Source of the DNA: Octopus sinensis
Lineage: Eukaryota
NCBI RefSeq assembly: GCF_006345805.1
Contig: NC_043002.1
Location: 13,392,001 to 13,456,000, forward strand
Direction: 5' to 3'
Length of the DNA stretch: 64,000 nucleotides
Shown here: positions 9,394 through 60,310 of the stretch, in pieces
Layout of the letters: each line of letters starts with the position of its first letter
Numbering within the stretch: position 1 is the first letter of the stretch
The notes under the pieces: model-generated
What the model was told of the DNA's origin: nothing
The model's database searches: none
What the model saw: the letters and a program-made list of their open reading frames with translations, nothing else
Position numbers and translations under genes: made by a program

Positions 9394-10204
9394 TTTCTAT
9401 TGCCATCTTTTACTTTTTTTCAGTCATTTGGACTGTGGCCATGCTGGGGCACCGGCTTAAAGAGCTTTTAGTCAAACAGATCGATTCCAGTACTTATTTC
9501 TTGAGTTAAAGTGTGGTATTTTATCAGTTTCTTATGCTGAATCGCTAAGTTACAAAGACATAAATATACCAGCACTGGTTGCCAAGCACTAGTAGAGTGA
9601 CAAACACAGACACATTCCGATTTTATGTTCATTTGCGTCGTATTTCCTTCATTTTAAGAGGTGATGTTTTAGTAATTATAGTGTGGGGGCGGACATCTAT
9701 TGCCTTGTATGTGGTGGTGGTGGGGGGTTCATTTTATTTCTCTCCCAAGACAAATATTTCCAATTTGGGTCACTGCAAAAAACTGTTTGCTGACCTCAGG
9801 CCTATACACAGTAGCAGAAACACCAACAGAAAAGATATGTGCTGAGTATTACATTCTTTTATGATTTGTGCATTGTTTCAATTTCCACGAAGAAGAAATA
9901 ATGAAAGGCTAATTCCAAGAATGTAGACATCCCGTAGGCAGCGTTTTATGTTTTAAAATATTTCGATTGAACATGGAAGGCTAAGTATATACTACTGGCC
10001 ACTTATTTGAATCACAAAATTAAGGCTACTAAGCAGGAGTGGCTGTGTGGTAAAAGCTTGCTTTTCAACTACATGGTTCCAAGTTCAGTCCCACTGTGTG
10101 ACACTTTGAGTAAATGTCTTTTATTACTGCCATTGACTGACCAAAGCCTTGTGGGTGGATTTGGTAGCTGGAAACTGAAATAAGCCTATTGTGTATGTGT
10201 ATAC

Positions 10205-10430
10205 ATTTCTTTACTACCCACAAGGGGCTAAACACAGAGGAGACAAACAAGGACAGACAAATGGATTAAGTCGATTACATCGACCCCAGTGTGTAACTGG
10301 TACTTAATTTATCGACCTCGAAAGGATGAAAGATAGTCGACCTCGGCGGAATTTGAGCCCAGAACGTAACGGCAGACGAAATACGGCTACGCATTTCGCC
10401 TGGCGTGCTAACGTTTCTAGCAGCTCACCG
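10205..10430 (-). mobile_element. SINE family B
   Basis: Reverse complement of the family B consensus, including the tRNA-like head. Confidence 0.8.
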
Positions 10431-11615
10431 TGTATGTGTATATATATGATGGGCCCTCGCATTGAAGATGGCGTATGAATCATTCAGGTTTTGCTGAGTC
10501 ACCTGCACAAATGATTTGTTAATGGTGATCAAGTGTTCGTGCCACATAATTAATTCACTCTCTCCATCAAATCGACGTTGTCTAAACAGGTGTGTTGTAC
10601 CATGCTTCATGTGTCAAAGTGATCAAAGAGCACTGTGAGATGAAGTGATTTGCACAGGAATGCAACGTACCACCCAGTCCAGGAATTGAAATCACAATCT
10701 TCCAATCGTGACTGCAACACCCTAACCATTAAGTCATTTATATAATGTACGTGTGCAATCTTCTATGTTTGCCCCCCACCACTACTTGACAATCGGTGTT
10801 GGTGTGTTTACATCCCCCATAACTTAGCAGTTGAGCAAAAGAGACTGATAGAATAAATATTGGGTTCAATTTATTCAACTAAAAGGTTTTCACCTACTTT
10901 CCATGATTACATGTCAGGTGATACAGTTCTATATTTAAGAGATGAGGAATTATGTGTGTGTATGTATATGTACATATGTGTGTATGTATGAATATGTGTA
11001 TGTATATGTATAGATATATATATATATGTATGTGTGTGTATGAATATATATATATATATTGGAGAACGGACGTTAAACGATGATGATGATATATATATAT
11101 ATATAAATGGGGGAATGTTAAATATTCCCTATTATTTTTGCAAGCTATATGGAACACAATGACGACAGCATGTACCAGTGAATGCGTATTAACACTTTTG
11201 CACTAACCCACCTAATTTTCACGATTTCAGGCGTAAGCAGAAAGGAATCAAAAACTGCAACCGTGTCAATTACTACCTGCATCTAAACACAGTATGGTTC
11301 TAATTTGGTTTAGATTATCTGTTTTGCACATCCATTTCTTTGGCATCATTTTGCAAGGATGTTGGTGTTGTTATCTTTAGCCAAATATAAAACGTCTTTG
11401 ATGTCTTCACTTCTCTACCAAGCAAAACAAATTAGTTGTGTAGTTTTCAGGTTATTTACGTATTTTGTTTTCTCCAGTCCTTCTGCACTTGCATATTTTG
11501 GTTTTTATAGTACAGGAATATATCATTTGCATTTGGTGTATTTTGAAGTAGGTTAGCTCTGCGCAGCTTGTGTGCTCACAAGTATCACTTCTCAGTATTT
11601 ACTCCTTTTACCACC

Positions 11616-13829: not shown

Positions 13830-14150
13830 ATCATGTGCCGGTGGCACATGAAAAAGCATTCAAACGAGGTCGTTGCCAGTGCTGCTGGACTAGCTCCTGT
13901 GCAGGTGGCACGTAAAAAAACACCATTTGAGTGTGGCCGTTGCCAGTACAGCCTGACTGGCCCCCGTGCTGGTGGCACGTAAAAGCACCCACTACACTTT
14001 CAGAGTGGTTGGCGTTAGGAAAGGCATCCAGCTGTAGAAACTCAGCCAGATCAAGATTGAAGCCTGGTGCAGCCATCTGGTTCACCAGTCCTCAGTCAAA
14101 TCGTTCAACCCATGCTTGCATGGAAAGCAGACCTTAAACGATGTTGATGA
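13830..14150 (+). mobile_element. RTE LINE 3'-UTR fragment (family C; gtgccggtggcacgtaaaaagcacc subunits, gttggcgttaggaagggcatccagc core, (GAT)n tail)
   Basis: Same sequence as the UTR attached to RTE coding sequence at 36093-36734. Confidence 0.75.
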
Positions 14151-14348
14151 AATATATGCAAATTTAAAAATAAAAAAAAAATATACAGTATTTTCTATTT
14201 CATGGATTTTCACCTACTGCGTGGTGGTTTTGGAATGTAAACACCCATGATAGTCGATTGCTGTAGCAGTTTTTTATATATATATATATAGTTACCGATA
14301 TGTATATCTTTGTGCATGTATTTATATGAATAATTTTTCTATTTTCAG

Positions 14349-14591
14349 AATTGGTGGTACAGTAGGTGCTATCATAACATGTCCACTTGAAGTTCTGAAA
14401 ACACGACTACAATCCTCAGTTGCCACGTTTCACCATTCTTCGGTGTATGTTCCGTCTCCGGTCTCCACACACTCCCTTGCACCCCAAACTTTCGTTGGAT
14501 TACGTTCACCAGGTTACAATGCATTGGAACTGTCTCAGAATTTACTAACAAACCGACCAAGAGTTTCATTTGGAATCTATGTATGTCTACG
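14349..14591 (+). CDS. SLC25A36: Carrier coding exon 2, copy 1 (243 nt, phase 2-2): [23 protein letters not shown]...GIYVCLR
   Basis: Acceptor ttttctattttcag|A at 14348/14349 and donor CG|gtaagt at 14591/14592; encodes helix 1 and signature motif 1. Confidence 0.92.
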
Positions 14592-15470
14592 GTAAGTTAC
14601 CGAACCAAAATTGGTCTTTGCATTCTTTAACTAGTTTAGAGCATTTTGGAGTAAAGTCAGTAATGCCTTCAAGAATTTGAGTCAATAACATTAAACCTGG
14701 TGTTTCAATGAGCATAAATGATACTGGTAAGAATCCTAAGATGCTGTGGGGAGAGAATATTGAAGGAGAGAGAGAGATGGTGGCAGGGTGATAATAATAA
14801 CACTTTTGAATAGAGGCACATGGATGCAGTTTTGAAGAAGTGTGCATATACATGTATATATATGTGTGTATAGTAGAGTATTAAGAGCACCATCTGTGCG
14901 TGATCATTGCCAGAGCAGCTATCTGGCCTCCGTGCCGGTGGCACGTAAAAGGGCACCATTCGAGCGTGAGTGTTACCAGCATTGCCTTACTGGCACCTGT
15001 GCCAGTGGAATGTGCAAAAGATTCGAGTGAGGTCTTTGCCAGTACTGCTTGACTGGCCCCATGCCGGTGGCACGTAAAAGCACCCACTACACTCTTGGAG
15101 TGGTTGGCGTTAGGAAGGGCATCTAGCTCTAGAAACTCTGCCAAATCAAGATTGGAGCCTGGTGCAACCATCTGGTTCGCCAGCCCTCGGTCAAATCATC
15201 CAACCCATGCTAACATGGAATGTGGACGTTAAACGATGATGATGATGATATATATGTGCATATACTGTAAAAACCTATGTAATTTGCACACCTGTGTAAT
15301 TTACGCAGGTGATTTTCAGGATAAAAATTGTTAAAAAAAAGCTTCTACTTGTGTAAAATTTGCATCCAAAAGTTTTCAGAATGATATATATATATAAATA
15401 TATATATATATAGTTACCGATATGTATATCTTTGTGCATGTATTTATATGAATAATTTTTCTATTTTCAG

Positions 15471-15713
15471 AATTGGTGGTACAGTAGGTGCTATCATAAC
15501 ATGTCCACTTGAAGTTCTGAAAACACGACTACAATCCTCAGTTGCCACGTTTCACCATTCTTCGGTGTATGTTCCGTCTCCGGTCTCCACACACTCCCTT
15601 GCACCCCAAACTTTCGTTGGATTACGTTCACCAGGTTACAATGCATTGGAACTGTCTCAGAATTTACTAACAAACCGACCAAGAGTTTCATTTGGAATCT
15701 ATGTATGTCTACG
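15471..15713 (+). CDS. SLC25A36: Carrier coding exon 2, copy 2 (identical 243-nt duplicate)
   Basis: Same sequence as 14349-14591 at offset +1122, with intact acceptor (cag ending 15470) and donor (gtaagt at 15714). Which copy is used is unknown. Confidence 0.75.
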
Positions 15714-16254
15714 GTAAGTTATCGAACCAAAATTGGTCTTTGCATTCTTTAACTAGTTTAGAGCATTTTGGAGTAAAGTCAGTAATGCCTTCAAGAATTT
15801 GAGTCAATAACATTAAACCTGGTGTTTCAATGAGCATAAATGATACTGGTAAGAATCCTAAGATGCTGTGGGGAGAGAATATTGAAGGAGAGAGAGAGAT
15901 GGTGGCAGGGTGATAATAATAACACTTTTGAATAGAGGCACATGGATGCAGTTTTGAAGAAGTGTGCATATACATGTATATATATGTGTGTATAGTAGAG
16001 TATTAAGAGCACCATCTGTGCGTGATCATTGCCAGAGCAGCTATCTGGCCTCCGTGCCGGTGGCACGTAAAAGCACCCACTACACTTTCAGAGTGGTTGG
16101 CGTTAGGAAGGCATCTAGCTCTAGAAACTCTGCCAAATCAAGATTGGAGCCTGGTGCAACCATCTGGTTCGCCAGCCCTCGGTCAAATCATCCAACCCAT
16201 GCTAACATGGAATGTGGACGTTAAACGATGATGATGATGATATATATGTGCATA

Positions 16255-16375
16255 TACTGTAAAAACCTATGTAATTTGCACACCTGTGTAATTTACGCAG
16301 GTGATTTTCAGGATAAAAATTGTTAAAAAAAAGCTTCTACTTGTGTAAAATTTGCATCCAAAAGTTTTCAGAATG

Positions 16376-16411
<36 letters not shown>

Positions 16412-16575
16412 CACCATCCGGTACGAATGTTTACATTTGTATGTTATTTTTCAACAAAAAAAAAACTTTCTAAATAAAATCTGGAAATGATCTACTCATG
16501 TAATTTACACACCCACTAAAGTTTATTTTTGTTTTTGCAAAAAAAAGTGCGTAAATTACATGTGTTTTTACAGTA
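16255..16575. mobile_element. Tc1/mariner-pogo-type MITE with internal (TA)n
   Basis: TIR tactgtaaaaacctatgtaattt / aaattacatgtgtttttacagta; its left half is duplicated at 15263-15412. Confidence 0.75.
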
Positions 16576-16867
16576 TATGAAATATATATATATATGTATT
16601 ACAGAGATGTACTTGCATAGCAAGTGACTTGATCTGAGATCGTGTGCTGAAACAAAAACAATTGCAGCATAGATGTAAGCCATTTAAGAACACATAAAAA
16701 CCATTAATTTCACTTCACTATTTAAATTTAATTTGTCAAAATATTTCCATCGCTTTGAAACCACGACCTGTTCACTGACAAAACTTAGTGTTACACATGA
16801 CTGAGCAGGGTACAGTGTTGAGGGATGTGATAGTATGAAAGAGGGGACAAGACAGGGATAGGTTTTC

Positions 16868-17233
16868 GGATCTTTTCGCTTTGACCGGCAGATTTTTAAA
16901 ATATTTTCTTTGTAACTAAAGACTTTTAAACTTTGTATACTGGTAGAATGTGTTTATAAAACATCTTTTTCTCTTGGTGTTCTTGAGAAAATAATTGTTG
17001 TTGACAACGATCCGGCAGAAATTGGATTCACCTCAATAAACGTCATTGATTGGTTGAAATTACCGAAATGCAAGAAATTAAAGAACAAATAGTTTACAAA
17101 CTACAGAATTTTCTCAAGAAAACCAAGAGAAAAAGATGTTTTATAAACACATTCTACCAGTATACAAAGTTTAAAAGTGTTTAGTTACAAAGAAATTATT
17201 TAAAAAAATCTGCCGGTCAAAGCGAAAAGATCC
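16868..17233. mobile_element. Foldback variant of the hAT-type MITE (~110-bp inverted arms)
   Basis: 16868-16978 is the near reverse complement of 17123-17233; flanks aggttttc/agtttttt. Confidence 0.8.
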
Positions 17234-28140: not shown

Positions 28141-28218
28141 CCACATAGTGGAAACTGAAGGTCTAAAAGGATTATTTAAAGGACTTGGCCCGAATCTTGT
28201 TGGAGTTGCTCCTTCACG
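28141..28218 (+). CDS. SLC25A36: Carrier coding exon 3 (78 nt): [26 protein letters not shown]
   Basis: Acceptor ttcttttcag ends 28140; donor CG|gtaaat; in frame with exon 2; conserved [DE]G..[YF][KR]G motif. Confidence 0.95.
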
Positions 28219-44010: not shown

Positions 44011-44111
44011 GGCTTTGTACTTTTTTGCATATGCTAATATGAAAATGACCCTAAATTCAGTATTAGCACCTGATACACCTCTGGTCCACATCTTCTCTGC
44101 ATTAGCAGCTG
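44011..44111 (+). CDS. SLC25A36: Carrier coding exon 4 (101 nt): ALYFFAYANMKMTLNSVLAPDTPLVHIFSALAAG
   Basis: Acceptor tctctcttttgcag ends 44010; donor G|gtaagt at 44112. Confidence 0.95.
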
Positions 44112-49386: not shown

Positions 49387-49453
49387 GTTTCACTGCAAGC
49401 ACAGCTACAAATCCAATTTGGTTTGTCAAGACTCGGTTGCAATTGGATCAGAA
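49387..49453 (+). CDS. SLC25A36: Carrier coding exon 5 (67 nt): [21 protein letters not shown]
   Basis: Acceptor catcttccag ends 49386; donor AA|gtgagt at 49454; signature motif 2. Confidence 0.95.
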
Positions 49454-51193: not shown

Positions 51194-51477
51194 GAAAGAC
51201 AACAGTTTAAAGTGTCGTGACTGTATTAAGAACATTTACCAACAGAGTGGTGTTAGAGGTTTCTACAAAGGCATCACCGCTTCCTACTTTGGAATGACCG
51301 AAACCGTTATTCATTTTGTGATATATGAAGCTCTCAAGAGCCGGTTCCTTGCCTACAATAATCAAAAGCAGAGTGGCAGCTACACTAACAATGAACGGAA
51401 ACCATCAGATTTCCTCTACTGCATGCTTTCTGGTGCCATTTCCAAGACTTGTGCTACATGCATTGCATATCCACATG
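51194..51477 (+). CDS. SLC25A36: Carrier coding exon 6 (284 nt): KDNSLKCRDCIKNIYQQSGVRGFYKGITASYFGMTETVIHFVIYE...CIAYPH
   Basis: Acceptor tttctattttcag ends 51193; donor G|gtaagt at 51478; open frame throughout and overlaps ORF 51294..51506. Confidence 0.95.
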
Positions 51478-53110
51478 GTAAGTTTGAAGAGAAAAATATG
51501 ATGTAATTACAAGAACTTTCCTTTTACAGCTGAGTTGGGTAGTTTTGCATTTATGAGACTCATCTTCATTATCATCATCATTGTTTAACATCTGCTTTTC
51601 CATGCTTGCATGAGTTAGATGGAATTTGTTTAAACAGATTTTCAATGACTGGATGCTCTTCCTGTTGCCAACCTTCACTTGTTTCTAAGTAAGGTAATAT
51701 TCCCCCATGGCCAGACATAGTTCAACAGAATATTGGAAACGGTGCAAAGAGCACCATAGAGTGTGATCATTGACAGAGCGGCTAACCGGCTTCCATGCCA
51801 GTGGCACTTAAAGAGCACCATTTGAGCATGATCGTTACCAGCGTCGCACTACTGGCACTCGAGTCCGTGCTAGTAGGGTATTAAGAGCACCTTTAAGATG
51901 ATGAAATGATAATGGCACGACATGTTTCATTTAGTTTCCATCCACGAAATATGGGACCTTGGTAAAAGACACTTTCCCAAGATGCCATGCTGTAGGATTG
52001 AACCTGAAACCGCATAGTTGGGAAACAAGCTTCATAAACAAGCAGCCATTCCTGTTTATTTATTAAACACACTCTTGAAAGTTATGCATTCAAATATTTT
52101 TACGACCACTTAATAGAATTCCTAAGGAGAATTGATTGCACAAGTCAAGTACCCAAAATCCCGTTACAAACATTTTGTTTTGGTTTTAAGCAAAGCACTT
52201 TGCTGTACTTGTCTATGCCTGACCTACAGACAGCATGTTCCACTTGTGTTGTATAGTTATTGTTGTTAACTCCAGACCAGCTTGAACCAGCTGTCTTATC
52301 ATTGAAAACATCCCAGCCATGGCATCCTGTCTGTTTTCCAGACATAATGAATATAATACTACCATATTATCCGACTGTATGATTTGAAGGATATTTCGCT
52401 GCTATTTCTAGCTGATCAAGTGACCATTTAGAAGCTCTCTTTCTGCTTCTCTCTAGCTGGTAATATTTATTAGTATTAGTAGTAGCATTTATCATCCTCA
52501 TCATCATCATTTAACATCTGTTTCCCATGCTGATATGGCTTGAATGGTTTGGTAGGAGCTAGCAAGGCTGGGAGCTGTACCAGGCTCCTTTGTTTTGGCA
52601 GTGTTGCTACAGCTTGACACCTTTCCTAAAACCAACCACTGTACAGAACATGCTAGATGGGTTTCACTTGGCACTAACATTCTATTTCAAAAATACTTTT
52701 TCCAACAATATATAGACACCTGAAATATGTAGAACCCATCCATCCGTCATTATCATCAGCTGGTAGAAACATTAGCATACTGGGCTAAATGCTCAGCGGT
52801 ATTTCATCTGTCTTATGTTCTGAGTTCAAATTCCTGCCAAGTTTGACTTTGCCTTTCATCCTTTCAAGGTCAATAAATTAAGTACCAGTTGCATACTGGG
52901 TCAATCTAATCAACTGGCTCCATCCTCCAAAATTTCAAACCTTGTGCCTAGAGTAGAAAAGAATATTAGTAAAGCATTCACTTAGATGTATTTTAGTAAG
53001 TTTAGTTCAACATCATGATAGGCTTGGCTTTTGTATTTGTCATTGACAGTCAAGAAAATAAGTACAAGTAAAAATTATAGATATCTTCTATAATTATTAT
53101 CCTTCTGTTT

Positions 53111-54213
53111 AATTAAGGAGTTAATATTTTTTATATCCTTTATATTATTTTTAAATTAAGGAGTTAATATTTTTTTATATCCTTTATATTATTTTTAAAT
53201 TAAGGAGTTAATATTAGTTTTTATATCCTTTATATTATTTTTAAATTAAGGAGTTAATATTATTTTTTATATCCTTTATATTATTTTTAAATTAAGGAGT
53301 TAATATTATTTTTTTATATCCTTTATATTATTTTTAAATTAAGGAGTTAATATTATTTTTTATATCCTTTATATTATTTTTAAATTAAGGAGTTAATATT
53401 ATTTTTTTATATCCTTTATATTATTTTTAAATTAAGGAGTTAATATTATTTTTTATATCCTTTATATTATTTTTAAATTAAGGAGTTAATATTATTTTTT
53501 TATATCCTTTATATTATTTTTAAATTAAGGAGTTAATATTATTTTTTTATATCCTTTATATTATTTTTAAATTAAGGAGTTAATATATTTTTTTATATCC
53601 TTTATATTATTTTTAAATTAAGGAGTTAATATTATTTTTTATATCCTTTATATTTTTTTAAATTAAGGAGTTAATATTATTTTTTTATATCCTTTATATT
53701 ATTTTTAAATTAAGGAGTTAATATTATTTTTTATATCCTTTATATTATTTTTAAATCAAGGAGTTAATATTATTTTTATATCCTTTATATTTTTTAAATT
53801 AAGGAGTTAATATTATTTTTTTATATCCTTTATATTATTTTTAAATTAAGGAGTTATATTATTTTTTTATATCCTTTATATTATTTTTAAATTAAGGAGT
53901 TAATATTATTTTTTTATATCCTTTATATTATTTTTAAATTAAGGAGTTAATATATTTTTTTATATCCTTTATATTATTTTTAAATTAAGGAGTTAATATT
54001 ATTTTTTTATATCCTTTATATTATTTTTAAATTAAGGAGTTAATATTATTTTTTATATCCTTTATATTATTTTTAAATTAAGGAGTTAATATTATTTTTT
54101 TATATCCTTTATATTATTTTTAAATTAAGGAGTTAATATTATTTTTAAATTAAGGAGTTATTTTTTATATCCTTTATATTATTTTTAAATCAAGGAGTTA
54201 ATATTATTTTTTT
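53111..54213. repeat. AT-rich minisatellite, ~46-48-bp unit (aattaaggagttaatattatttttttatatcctttatattattttta), about 25 units by eye
   Basis: Direct head-to-tail repeats without spacers; variation mainly in T-run length; ends ~20 nt before the last-exon acceptor. Confidence 0.95.
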
Positions 54214-54236
54214 AATATCTTTTTTTTGTTTTGCAG

Positions 54237-54433
54237 AAGTTGCACGGACAAGGTTACGTCAAGAAGGCCTCAAATACACCTCCTTTTTCCAGACGTTATT
54301 CCTCGTTGCTCGCGAAGAAGGTTTCTTGGCTTTGTACCGTGGTCTTGGCACACAGTTCGTACGTCAGATACCTAACACAGCAATAGTGATGTCCACATAC
54401 GAACTTGTTGTTTACAAGTTGTCTGACCGGTGA
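54237..54433 (+). CDS. SLC25A36: Carrier last coding exon: [21 protein letters not shown]...[11 protein letters not shown]
   Basis: Acceptor ttttgttttgcag ends 54236; TGA at 54431-54433; completes signature motif 3. Confidence 0.95.
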
Positions 54434-55472
54434 ACTCTTCTTTAGCAAACTGTGATTTAATAGGTCTTGTGAAACTTGGCGTTTTAGCAATGCAGAGAGG
54501 GCCAGAAGGGAGAAACTACTGGTTCTTTTATGATGCTGCAGAAGACATTTAATTTTCTTGGGACCTTTTGTAAAAGATTTTCCTTGGCTGTACTAAACAA
54601 ACAAACAAACAAACAAAAAAAAAACTGAAATGGACTACAGGCCAAAAGTCCCAAGTGCTTTATATGAATTTTTTTAAGGAAAAAAAAAAACCATCCGTAG
54701 CCATGCAAAGCATCTTGTGACCAACACAATTGGTAACATAGTTGTTAATCATTAAACTATTTAACGTTTATGTTTTTTTTAATGATTTAAAAAGAGATAT
54801 TTAAATCTTGTCTTTCCACATTCCTCCTTCTAAATATCTTTGTGTTGACCCACAGATTTCGGTTGTGGGTCTAAGTGTAGAAAGAGACAAGGTGTCTTCT
54901 TAAAATTCCACTTCTCCTCCCTAGCAGCTATTTGCTTGATGCTTGGTTCATTGCCGAGTTCCATTAGTTGTCCAATCTTTTTAAAACTTCATATACATGT
55001 ATGTATACGTGTACGTTTTTTTTTTTAAGACAATGGGCGATGAGGAAACATTTTTCTTTAAATGCATCTTTGCTAAGATGTAAATATGCCTCTTGTTTTC
55101 ATTTTCCTTTAGAAATGTATTTTACAAAAGGAAAAGAGACAATAGAATAAGAGGAAAAAGAAAGATGGGCAGACTGAGATGCAAATACAAAGGAGAAAGA
55201 GAAAACATATAATGAAGAAAAACAGGAAAGAAAACAAAATAATTTAAAATTTAAAGGATTATTTTAAAAAGGAAAAAAATTGTTTTTTAAATTTTCATTT
55301 ATGAAGTTAAAAAAAAATATAAATTGTAGATAGCTAAAAATAGATAAAAATTAACAAATTTAAACATCAAAAATTTCAAAAACCAAAAAAAAAAAATTAA
55401 AATTCTACCAAAGAAAACCAAGAAATGTGAGTAGCAATCTTAAAACAGATTTGATCCAAGTCAAATATTAAA

Positions 55473-55865
55473 TTAACCCTTTGATGCCAAACACCTGAAA
55501 CCGCCCCTGGTTCTATGACACTTACCTCCTGCTGTTAAGTGATCTCAAAATTCCTCATTAATATTTTCTGTTAATATATATTCCAGACACCAGTTAAATA
55601 ATTACAAGATTATTTTTACTATTCTTCATTATTAAAATAATAAAAAAAATAATAAAATTCTAATTAAAATAATGGCAATGCATTTCGTTAGATATATGGT
55701 AACAAAAGTGTTAAAGTGATCTAAAAACCTTCAATCAAAATTTCATTTTCATTTATGTTTCAAACCCCCAGCTTATTAATGAGAAAGTTAGTTTAATAAA
55801 CTCTTCATTCTTTTCTGAAATTAATTGAAACAATAGCAATGGATATATGGTGACAAATGGGTTAA
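55473..55865. mobile_element. Degenerate piggyBac-type MITE remnants downstream of the stop codon
   Basis: ttaaccctttgat start; ggtaacaaaagtgttaa and gtgacaaatgggttaa ends. Confidence 0.5.
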
Positions 55866-56328
55866 AATAATATTCATCTAAATGATTAACAAAAACAGAA
55901 CATGGTGTTAATCCTTGCTTAAGGATAATCTATGTGATGAATTTGTTCATTTATTATATATTTTTTTTTTCCTCTTAGGTATAACTAAAGATAGGATGAG
56001 ACTAGTCAAATCTGATTTTACTAGCTTATGTGAAAGAACTTTAGAACGGAACTTATTCTAAAACAAACAACGGCAGATATTTAAATTTATTTTTTTATTT
56101 TTTTAAAAAATGTTTTTTCTTCCTTCAAAAATTTTAATTTATTGTTCAATTTTTTTTTTAATTTAATTTTTTTGTTTGTTGTTGTTGTTTAATAACAGCT
56201 GTTGCAGTAGTCGCATTGGCTGTTACATTGCACTGTCTCCAACGGAGACTTACCAATACATAAACATATATCATACACCATACATATTACTTATGTACAT
56301 TTACATACATGTGTGTGTATATATACAC

Positions 56329-56397
<69 letters not shown>

Positions 56398-56747
56398 ATA
56401 TGCAAATATATGTGCATTTATACACACTTATGCATGCGCATACATACACACGCACATTTATACATGCATTTATATGTCGAGCATTTGTGTTTTTGTGCAG
56501 AAATGGCTAAGTGATAAATACACACCTGCGTTTGAAGTGTTAGGTCCCCGATATAATTGTGTGGCAAGGAAATCAGATAGATTCTACGGGCCCCAAAGAT
56601 TTGTGCACTTGAGGTTGGTCATTGGGAGATGCTAGGATATGAATGTGAACTGCATCAAATAGTTAGGCATAGGAATATCGCTCATATATATATGTCTGTA
56701 TCCGCATATAAATACATATATACATGTGTGTGAGTGCTTGTATGCAT

Positions 56748-56950
56748 CTACTAACATATATATTTATAAATGTATATAATATATATTTGTGTCTATTTAT
56801 ACATGTATATATTTATAAATTTATATATTTATATATTTATAAATATGTATCTACTAACATATATTTATAAATGTATATAATATATATTTGTGTCTATTTA
56901 TACATGTATATATTTATAAATGTATTTATATATTTATAAATATGTATTTA
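56748..56950. repeat. AT-rich ~100-bp tandem duplication
   Basis: ctactaacatata...atatttataaatatgtat occurs twice in succession. Confidence 0.75.
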
Positions 56951-58201
56951 CTGATAGTACATATATAAATATATACATTATTTATAATATATATAAATTC
57001 ACACACTTGCAAAAATATGTGAGTGTGTGACATTTTATAGGAGACATCAATATATGTATATATATACTTATGAAAATGTAATTATAAATATGTACATAAT
57101 ATCAGTATATATTTATAGATGTGTGTATGTATATATATATATATATATATATGCATGTAGATATTATAATCTATAATTAACCTCCACTGTCCATGTTGCC
57201 ATGCTTTGGACAACTTGACAGGGTCCAACAGCCGAAAGGAATGCAGCATATTCCAACGCCTGTTTTGGCATGCTTTCTACAAAGCAGATAATGGAGCGTG
57301 ACAACTGATCTTACGCGAGTGTATATATAATTAAGTATATATTTAAAATACATACTGTATTTAGTAAAGACAACAATATATCTTAAGACTAGAAATAAAA
57401 AGAGAAAAAAAAACCCACAACCTCAAATGGAAATATAACTAAGCCACTATTGTTGGCTGGTAGATCATTTCTAAAGATTACACCAAGTGTAGACTATGCT
57501 TTTATTTCATGTTTGAAATAAGAAATTCCTCATATTGGTTTCAGATTTGGGTTCATATTACCAAGTAATTTTAACAATTTAGTCATGTCATATGTCTTGA
57601 AATTCTTGTAATCTGGCCACTTCTTAGTCTCTGAAAGATAAACTACAGCAATTAGCATCAGATCTAGACCTCTTTAGAATTTTTAACTTGCAGTAAACTC
57701 ACTCAAGAATGTGAATAATTAATTAACTTATATTAACTGTAAAGATTTTTTATCTATAAATCATATATATCTCTAAGTGTGTATATGCTCAATATAGTTA
57801 ATAACTTTGATAGGTTTCAGCCAGTATAGGGCCCAGGCCATGTCTAACTCAATAGCACCAACTGATGAAGTCATTTAGTCATAAATGGGGCACCATAGCC
57901 CACTATAGTAAAGAGTTATTATTGTTGGAGACATATCCGGGTATAAATTATTTTTATTTTGGTCAAGATAGTTTCCAGCTGCTCTGAGTTTTACCAGCGA
58001 GTGCATAGTATGTTCAGGCGAGTTACAAATGCTGTAGCTCATAACTTGCTTGGCCTGAAGACCCTGTGTACCAACAAAACAAAGCTCAACAGAGCAAGAG
58101 ACGAACTTGACCAAAATAAAAAAAATCATGACTTTCTATTACTAAGTACTCTCTCTTCGGAAAGTCAACATTCAAGTGACACATATACTTGTGTGTGTAT
58201 G

Positions 58202-58234
<33 letters not shown>

Positions 58235-58245
58235 AATCAATGGGA

Positions 58246-58460
58246 ACAATGAATTCTGGGAAAATAGTTTAAGCCATTTAAGAACACAGAAGTGGTGTTA
58301 CAATATATCTTAAGACTAGAATTAAAAAGAGAAAAAAAAACCCACTTGCAAAAATATGTGAGTGTGTGACATTTTATAGGAGACATCAATATATATATAT
58401 ACTTATGAAAATGTAATTATAAATATGTACATAATATCAGTATATATTTATAGATGTGTG

Positions 58461-58508
<48 letters not shown>

Positions 58509-58721
58509 TGTAGATATTATAATCTATAATTAACCTCCACTGTCCATGTTGCCATGCTTTGGACAACTTGACAGGGTCCAACAGCCGAAAGGAATGCAGC
58601 ATATTCCAACGCCTGTTTTGGCATGCTTTCTACAAAGCAGATAATGGAGCGTGACAACTGATCTTACAATGAATTCTGGGAAAATAGTTTAAGCCATTTA
58701 AGAACACAGAAGTGGTGTTAC
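58246..58721. repeat. Complex templated insertion (A-B-C-A) built from nearby sequence
   Basis: A: 58246-58301 = 58666-58721; B: 58300-58345 = 57373-57418; C: 58343-58667 = 57004-57314. Confidence 0.9.
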
Positions 58722-59599
58722 GTTCACTATTTGCTGTGAGTAGGTCACCGACGCTATTTCATAGTATATAATGCAAGTATATATATGTATCTAGATGTGT
58801 GTATATATATATATATACATACACATACACAAATATACAATTACACATTTATAAATATGTAGGTATATATGTATGCATACATATGTGTATATGTGTGTGT
58901 ATATAAATATACATACGGCATGTTTCAGTCTGTGTTGTGTGTGTGTTATATATATATATATTTATATTTAAACATAAATACAAATATAGTATATGTATGT
59001 TTATCACACTGTGTGCTCATATACACGCAACATGCATACACTCACAATACTTGTGTGTTTATCATATATGTGTGTGTGTGTGTGTATGGTCACATACATA
59101 CACATACAGTACTTGTGTGCTTATTTATGTATAAACATAATAGTGTGCATTCGCATGCGCACACACACATGCAGACAATCTGAAGAAGTATGTTGGTGCA
59201 TTTACATGCAGCGTAGGATTGTGCATTTGCAAGAAAGTAGGACTAGCTGGGTGTGCAGCCACGTGTGTCTGTGTGTATATATTTCTAGAGGTTTTTTTTT
59301 TCCTGCTTTATATACATATATTTAATAATTCAAGTGTGCTCATAGTCTTCCTTTTTGTCCCAATATGCCAATATATATATGTATATATATATACCTGCCA
59401 AATTCTTGCATATGTGCACAGACTAGAATGCATTGTGATTGGGTTTATATGTCTATGTATACTTGATTTATGTGATTTGTATGATTGATGTATTTTTGAT
59501 TAACGTGAGATCAGTCATGAGTAAGTGCGTAGAGTACTTTGTCTTGAATTTGTAGATGCATTATCTCTACGATTAAGGAAATCTGTTCTGTAACATATA

Positions 59600-60310
59600 G
59601 ATATATGTATATATGTGTGGGTATGCACACAAATACGCACATGCTCACATATATATATGTGTGTGTGTGTATATGTATGTGTATATATATGTATGTGTAT
59701 ATATATGTGTGTATATATATGTATGTATATATATATATGTATGTATATATATGTGTATGTATATATATATGTGTATGTATATATATATGTATGTGTATAT
59801 ATATGTATGTGTATATATGTGTATATATATATGTATGTGTATGTATATATATATATATATGTATGTGTATGTATATATATATATATATACGTAACGTATG
59901 TATGTATATATATATACGTATGTATATGTATGTATATATATATACGTAATGTATATATATACGTATGTATATATATGTATATATATACGTATGTATATGT
60001 ATGTATGTATATATATGTACGTATGTATATGTATGTATATATGTACGTATGTATATGTATATACGTATGTATATATGTACGTATGTATATGTATATACGT
60101 ATGTATATGTACGTATGTATATGTATGTATATATATATATGTATGTATATATATATATGTATGTATATATATATGTATGTATGTATGTATATATGTATGT
60201 ATGTATATATGTATGTATGTATGTATATATGTATGTATGTATGTATATATGTATGTATGTATGTATGTATATATGTATGTATGTATATATGTATGTATGT
60301 ATATATGCAT
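59600..60310. repeat. Compound microsatellite (TA/TG/ATGT/ACGT motifs)
   Basis: ~700 bp of low-complexity di- and tetranucleotide repeats; source of the Y/I/T/H- and Y/V/C/M-rich ORFs. Confidence 0.95.

Follow-up and report, generated by a model that had tools for sequence, protein, structure and literature searches.

The assembly of Octopus sinensis (GCA_006345805.1) contains two adjacent and identical copies of coding exon 2 in a gene for a mitochondrial carrier similar to SLC25A36. From sequence comparison, we consider this to be probably a real and very young tandem duplication of 1.1 kb, arisen on the O. sinensis lineage and probably still polymorphic. The gene was studied in a stretch of 64,000 nucleotides (CM016864.1:13,392,001-13,456,000), referred to here as the window, and in its surrounding locus of 83 kb (L001), and was compared with the orthologous loci of Octopus vulgaris (GCA_951406725.2, L002) and Octopus bimaculoides (GCA_001194135.2, L003). 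Positions are those of the window unless one of these loci is named.

The duplicated unit

The two units (Table 1) were paired by the repeat finder at 100% identity over stretches of 300 nt and 295 nt, and besides this pair no other kb-scale near-identical repeat was found in the 83-kb locus. A similarity of 99.6% over approximately 1 kb is not one that chance would produce. In the global alignment the copies differ by one isolated substitution (C/T at 14600/15722), by three substitutions clustered within four bases (15094/15096/15097 in copy 1 versus 16087/16089/16090 in copy 2), by a 1-bp indel at 15117, where copy 2 has one G fewer, and by a 129-bp segment (14933-15061) that is found only in copy 1 and sits there between 19-nt direct repeats TGCCGGTGGCACGTAAAAG. 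This represents a divergence of 0.42% (4 substitutions in 959 sites), corresponding to about two events. No N is present in the window or anywhere in the 83-kb O. sinensis locus, so the sequence across both copies is uninterrupted.

The two copies of exon 2 are identical, as are the 73 nt preceding the acceptor and the 8 nt following the donor, and both copies have the same splice sites, acceptor ttttcag and donor gtaagt (GT-AG). The exon consists of one base, 80 codons and two bases, that is, phase 2 at either end, and the intron separating the copies has 879 nt. Splicing one copy to the other joins CG to A, restoring an arginine codon and leaving the frame intact, with the junction sequence GTATGTCTACG followed directly by AATTGGTGGTACAG. 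An initial annotation of the window had described all of this from the letters alone: a tandem duplication at 14275-16410, an identical frame-preserving exon with its length, phase, splice sites and intron, and the differences in the flanks (the C/T, the 129-bp deletion, a few substitutions and the 1-bp indel). The alignments, the repeat finder and the makeup of the exon agree with it in every one of these respects.

Two further observations concern exon 2. Its sequence is conserved between the octopuses even at synonymous positions and in the part coding for a disordered loop, whereas the intron next to it has diverged by 3-5% and more. RefSeq isoform X5 of O. sinensis (P0128; MNNFSIFR...) begins within the intron, at an ATG 23 nt ahead of the exon 2 acceptor; this ATG (14326 or 15448) lies just downstream of a TA tract resembling a TATA box.

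Table 1 Features of the exon 2 duplication and of the carrier gene in the window
Feature	Position	Strand	Basis or remark
Duplication unit copy 1	14276..15397 (1122 bp)	+	repeat finder, global alignment, four-way alignment with O. vulgaris and O. bimaculoides
Duplication unit copy 2	15398..16410 (1013 bp)	+	repeat finder, global alignment, four-way alignment; carries derived states
Exon 2 copy a, SLC25A36-like gene	14349..14591 (243 nt)	+	encodes residues 15-95
Exon 2 copy b	15471..15713 (243 nt)	+	identical to copy a
(TA)8 tract, left breakpoint	14275..14290	.	59 nt upstream of exon 2 acceptor
Junction (TA)n tract	15384..15412	.	left side is the hairpin inner tract; right side runs into AGTTACCG, sequence upstream of exon 2
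(TA)n tract in intact hairpin, right breakpoint	16376..16411	.	tract scan
Intact hairpin (MITE-like) element	16251..16579 (329 bp)	+	33-nt terminal inverted repeats; orthologous place in O. vulgaris and O. bimaculoides
Orphan left hairpin arm	15249..15383	+	between exon 2 copies; 100% identical to 16241-16375
SINE-like repeat in copy 1	14880..15245	+	about 30 copies per 80-kb locus; includes the 129-bp segment absent from copy 2
SINE-like repeat in copy 2	16002..16237	+	same repeat with 129-bp deletion and TTTCAG patch
Upstream SINE-like copy	13851..14150	+	87% identical to 15057-15245, spacing 1095 bp; likely patch donor
Exon 3	28141..28218	+	splice sites read from sequence; spliced product 100% identical to annotated protein
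Exon 4	44011..44111	+	probe match and splice sites
Exon 5	49387..49453	+	probe match and splice sites
Exon 6	51194..51477	+	probe match and splice sites
Exon 7, stop codon included	54237..54433	+	end matches annotated gene range end (L001 position 73000)
MITE, miniature inverted-repeat transposable element; SINE, short interspersed nuclear element.

Comparison with other octopuses and age

A single exon 2 was found both in O. vulgaris (L002 33021-33263), with 0 of 243 positions differing from O. sinensis, and in O. bimaculoides (L003 28528-28770), with 2 of 243. The order in O. vulgaris is a (TA)n tract, exon 2, intron, SINE-like repeat, a complete hairpin element with an inner (TA)n tract and the right flank, and both halves of the hairpin are located at the orthologous place in O. 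bimaculoides. Since both species have one exon 2 copy and the whole hairpin, the single copy is ancestral, and the duplication is derived and younger than the hairpin. The hairpin element, on this comparison, is older than the split of these Octopus species, which has been placed at ~34 million years (My) ago (PMC10700109). The initial annotation had likewise placed the duplication after the insertion of a MITE; the order of events holds against the outgroups, while MITE can be kept only as a structural label, as no further copy of the element beyond the orthologous ones was found in the 250 kb of the three Octopus loci.

In the four-way alignment copy 1 has the O. vulgaris state at every position where the copies differ, and therefore it is copy 2 that holds the derived states, namely the T at 15722, the 129-bp deletion, a TTTCAG patch at 16087-16090 and the missing G. 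The patch (CACTTTCAGAG, 16049-16100 versus 13975-14022) is shared, within 250 kb of Octopus sequence, solely with the neighbouring SINE-like copy at ~13992, approximately 2 kb upstream. It looks like a short ectopic conversion, which would have taken place either on the precursor allele of copy 2 or after the duplication.

From O. vulgaris, O. sinensis has diverged by 5.1-5.3% within the unit and by 3.0-3.3% in the sequence flanking it. Scaling the divergence between the copies to a split 2.5 My ago (PMC10700109) gives an age for the duplication of ~0.2-0.35 My when the four substitutions are counted, and of ~0.05-0.09 My when only the isolated one is. The copies thus differ by no more than alleles do (heterozygosity is 1.22% in O. 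vulgaris, PMC10700109), so that the duplication, if real, is probably not fixed.

Breakpoints and origin

The tract scan places both ends of the unit inside (TA)n tracts, where the initial annotation had put them. The junction tract opens with GA(TA)5 TAAA (TA)n, as does the sequence from 16376 onward, and closes in AGTTACCG like the tract at 14275-14290. The sequence found only at the tandem junction reads ...CAGAATGA(TA)nAGTTACCGATATG, and likewise GCATCCAAAAGTTTTCAGAATGA-(TA)n-GTTACCGATATGTATATC. Tracts of at least 12 bp cover only 1.2-1.4% of the locus, and both ends would fall inside such tracts by chance with a probability of about 2e-4, indicating that the join was made through them. 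The initial annotation had gone further and proposed unequal exchange between TA microsatellites; the part about the tracts stands, whereas a template switch during replication is equally compatible, the sequence fitting both mechanisms alike.

In either case, the event would have joined the TA tract located 59 nt upstream of the exon 2 acceptor to another one in the middle of the hairpin in intron 2. The copied unit would then comprise exon 2 and its complete splice signals, together with ~880 nt of intron 2, a SINE-like repeat and the hairpin's left arm. The differences between the copies may come from an exchange between alleles, or from a later short ectopic conversion from the neighbouring SINE-like copy together with one point change. 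Two other origins were discarded. Recombination between SINE-like copies does not account for the junction, which lacks the 14150-14275 sequence that leads from the upstream SINE-like copy to exon 2, and a single-step model in which the SINE-derived patch is the footprint of the exchange fails because the patch is within copy 2 and away from the junction.

In O. vulgaris, an independent 56-bp tandem duplication (AGTTACCGATGTGTAT(A)TCTTTGTACATGTATTTAT, present twice, L002 32911-33000) adjoins the same upstream (TA)n tract. This suggests that the TA tract upstream of exon 2 is a recurrently unstable site.

Real duplication or assembly artefact

The alternative that survives best is that O. sinensis has a single copy, heterozygous for the 129-bp indel, the single-nucleotide polymorphism and the lengths of the TA tracts, and that the assembly placed the two alleles one after the other and joined them in the low-complexity TA tracts. 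The initial annotation had itself raised the possibility of two haplotypes assembled in tandem, which the missing gap and the microhomology junction make less likely. False exon gains of this kind have been documented in assemblies of heterozygous genomes (PMC9516828). The octopus case resembles the false heterotype duplications described by Ko et al. 2022 (PMC9516828), which also involve adjacent near-identical copies with differences at the level of alleles, an apparent exon gain and a heterozygous species. In that work, falsely duplicated pairs on one scaffold were mostly separated by gaps and true ones were not (Ko et al. 2022, PMC9516828). Unlike them, the octopus copies have no gap between or near them and meet at a precise microhomology junction. 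With no N in the whole 83 kb, the locus lacks the sign that normally betrays a falsely duplicated haplotype.

Several observations weigh against a real duplication. The difference between the copies (0.42%) is within the allelic range of the sister species, although a young real duplication would give such a value as well, and all the derived states are gathered in one copy with all the ancestral ones in the other, as two haplotypes would show. The duplication is absent from both other Octopus assemblies compared. No junction of exon 2 with exon 2 was found in the RefSeq isoforms or among 5.8 billion proteins, which would be unexpected for a duplication that is fixed and spliced by default; the junction query was run against a collection that does not include O. 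sinensis transcript assemblies, so that its silence is weak evidence. Invertebrates usually have a single important Rim2-type gene, and a fixed disruptive insertion in it would be a surprise.

On the other side, the precise microhomology join supports a real event, and the left TA tract, with 16 nt, is far below the overlap that a long-read assembler should require. Alleles differing by 0.4% would normally be collapsed into one by the assembly, and the pair is the sole such repeat in the 83 kb. Two sequence queries bear on neither side. An exact look-up of the exon 2 open reading frame (ORF, 89 amino acids) in public assemblies gave no match and hence no independent O. sinensis contig. A query with the 81-residue exon peptide returned only three exon-like ORFs from other species but not the full-length protein in which the peptide occurs exactly; short queries are thus unreliable in that search, and we drew no conclusion from its negative outcome. 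On balance, we regard the artefact as the less likely explanation, although one to be taken seriously, and hold that the duplication is rather probably real on at least one haplotype of the sequenced animal.

Tandem exon duplication through short repeats and false exon gains in assemblies are both known kinds of event. What is unusual here is that the event is so young, that two outgroups resolve it fully and that only half of the hairpin was copied. If real, the locus would be a dated and unusually clean exon duplication at birth, with the ancestral state given by two outgroups, the breakpoints resolved to the tract and the copies still identical, and what first becomes of a duplicated exon (double inclusion, skipping or loss) could be tested in one species. 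Its geometry would also fit a published and mostly theoretical account of how competing RNA structures arise (see below). If it is an artefact, the warning would be that false exon gains can occur without any gap, even within a contig of a cephalopod reference in wide use on which the annotation of O. vulgaris has also drawn. In both cases the normal protein stays as it is, and there is no hint of a new function.

Predicted effect on transcript and protein

A real duplication places identical splice signals 879 nt apart, and the default expectation would be that both copies of exon 2 are spliced in. Both copies are normally included in the single-exon tandem duplications that cause human disease, such as that of DMD exon 2. 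The octopus case shares with these the kb-scale intragenic tandem arrangement, intronic breakpoints and full splice signals on both copies. Unlike DMD exon 2, the octopus exon is a multiple of three, so its double inclusion is in frame and would escape nonsense-mediated decay. Double inclusion would produce a carrier of 417 residues with an 81-residue insertion on the matrix side, and skipping of either copy would give the normal protein of 336 residues.

In the AlphaFold 2 (AF2) model of the normal protein (mean predicted local distance difference test, pLDDT, of 78; six long helices plus matrix helices), the first transmembrane helix (H1) spans residues 5-38, residues 38-86 are disordered (pLDDT below 50) and the matrix helix h12 spans 90-101. 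Exon 2 (residues 15-95) thus encodes only part of H1, its final 24 residues, along with signature motif 1, the disordered loop and six residues from the start of h12. Double inclusion would therefore repeat these segments and, on this model, would add no complete extra transmembrane helix. The initial annotation had expected helix 1 and signature motif 1 to be duplicated, which is right for the motif and too much for the helix. A second hydrophobic half-helix together with a second signature would likely disturb folding. Loop 38-86 is the least conserved part of the family, variable in sequence and length, so that an insertion may be tolerated.

It could also be that both copies are included and yield a functional 417-residue carrier with an enlarged matrix loop, which we consider very improbable. 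The frame is kept, the splice signals are identical, the insertion falls in or next to the disordered and unconserved loop, and some relatives of the carrier reach 416-426 residues. However, no product of this type is on record, and the insertion would repeat the 24 hydrophobic H1 residues and motif 1 and cut h12 after six residues. The seven annotated products in the protein cluster, five of them from O. sinensis, all have 330-342 residues. The double-inclusion isoform and the mutually exclusive exon pair suggested by the initial annotation thus find no supporting record among these products or among the proteins searched with the junction. Any effect of the duplicated allele on the protein remains putative, with no double-inclusion protein on record.

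The hairpin element and possible competing RNA structures

The intact hairpin element has arms of 33 nt (16251-16283 and 16547-16579) that are 88% complementary. It resembles a MITE by structure, being short, non-coding and bounded by terminal inverted repeats, and we use the name only as a structural label. Its flanks are TA-rich and the complementarity continues into them, which blurs the boundary of the element and any target-site duplication. As RNA it is predicted to form a strong structure, with a minimum free energy (MFE) of -100.1 kcal/mol and z = -10.3. The duplication repeated only its left half (15249-15412, identical to 16241-16404), and the right arm is single.

This arrangement is the geometry of the docker/selector model proposed by Ivanov and Pervouchine 2018 (PMC6071210) for the origin of mutually exclusive exons, in which the tandemly duplicated unit takes in an exon, the intron sequence beside it and just one arm of a stem-loop, the other arm staying outside. 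The octopus unit shares with such systems the equal length and phase of the exons and would have two selectors (the left arms) and one docker (the right arm), the competing pairings being predicted only. When 15230-16600 is folded to its MFE, the partner of the right arm is the distal left arm, and exon 2b lies enclosed between them. A real pair could then already behave as alternative exons, with the two left arms competing for the right one and the distal pairing looping out exon 2b and restoring the normal messenger RNA. This would account for the missing double-inclusion record.

We find this improbable, as it depends on thermodynamic prediction. The docker is located 263 nt from the proximal left arm and about five times as far, 1255 nt, from the distal one, and folding during transcription should favour the local hairpin, which loops out nothing. 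Nor does anything bar double inclusion here, unlike in docker/selector exons, given an exon of 81 codons, an 879-nt intron and the same GT-AG sites in both copies. A further difference is that the octopus copies are identical, so that the choice between them leaves the protein unchanged. Surveys have addressed tandem exon duplications that lead to mutually exclusive exons (PMC9013439, PMC8373072, PMC9741552). Most known mutually exclusive cases are ancient and diverged, whereas the octopus pair either dates back no more than a few hundred thousand years or is not fixed. It is equally improbable, on the same modelling, that the locus is a first-generation snapshot of the birth of mutually exclusive exons, in which competition between the arms would decide between looping out exon 2b and an 81-residue insertion. 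Were it so, one step would have made two identical exons, two selector arms and one docker, and the allele would be tolerated and free to diverge.

A second, younger-looking palindrome, at 16868-17233, follows the hairpin element at a distance of about 290 nt. Its arms (16868-16992 and 17108-17233) are 96-100% complementary and separated by a 115-nt spacer, and the region is colinear with O. vulgaris.

The gene and its product

The exons downstream of the duplication were found with a human SLC25A36 sequence, used only as a probe, which located six further coding segments on the + strand. The spliced product has 100% identity over 322 residues with the annotated protein of 336 residues, solute carrier family 25 member 36(-like) (XP_029638337.1 in O. 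sinensis, CAI9724907.1 in O. vulgaris). It has three tandem Mito_carr repeats (PF00153; 222 bits in four stretches, repeat 1 being split by the long loop) and the carrier signature P-x-[DE]-x-x-[KR]-x-[RK] at the end of H1, H3 and H5, as PLEVLKTR (P26), PIWFVKTR (P164) and PHEVARTR (P270). The three motifs are invariant across 41 relatives. Among the best 120 protein matches, those with a family name are called SLC25A36, SLC25A33/36, Rim2 or pyrimidine nucleotide transporter, names that are labels of the source databases and not assayed functions, and the rest are unnamed or uninformative.

By its sequence, then, the gene belongs to the SLC25A33/36 (Rim2) subfamily of the mitochondrial carrier family, with pyrimidine-nucleotide transport as its predicted activity. 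The repeats, the signatures, the closest relatives and the match to the annotated protein all agree with the pyrimidine nucleotide carrier named by the initial annotation. SLC25A33, SLC25A36 and the yeast and fly Rim2 likewise have three Mito_carr repeats and three signature motifs, and full-length identity to SLC25A36- or Rim2-named proteins of molluscs, arthropods and chordates is 55-65%. The normal 336-residue octopus product shows no difference from these carriers and is an ordinary member of the family.

The window does not reach the first coding exon, which precedes it (L001 about 10001-10600). The segment 6247-6302 of the window, considered as exon 1, was rejected, as it sits in a tandem repeat. 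The real first coding exons (M..VHLLAGG followed by a GTAAGA donor) form a tandem array with a period of ~170-210 bp, with four copies in O. sinensis (L001 ~10001-10600), three in O. vulgaris (L002 ~10001-10404) and three in O. bimaculoides (L003 ~9820-10213), one of the latter without an ATG. These copies correspond to RefSeq isoforms X1-X4, which differ solely in their first 13-14 residues. The array indicates an older history of tandem exon duplication in this SLC25A36-like gene.

Rfam and tRNA scans of the window gave no match. In the O. bimaculoides protein P0005, VFTSWSSCGAFKILT replaces the conserved segment of signature motif 2 (residues ~155-172), which probably reflects an error in calling exon 5 where the assembly has gaps (8683 N in L003) and not a real difference. 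The O. vulgaris isoform P0125 (342 residues) has its last 15 residues swapped for a different C-terminus of 21 residues, SLEDKLQQLASDLVPYHTRPL, which would truncate helix 6. Around and after the last coding exon (52001-60000), the G+C content falls to 0.25-0.30, compared with 0.35-0.43 elsewhere in the window.

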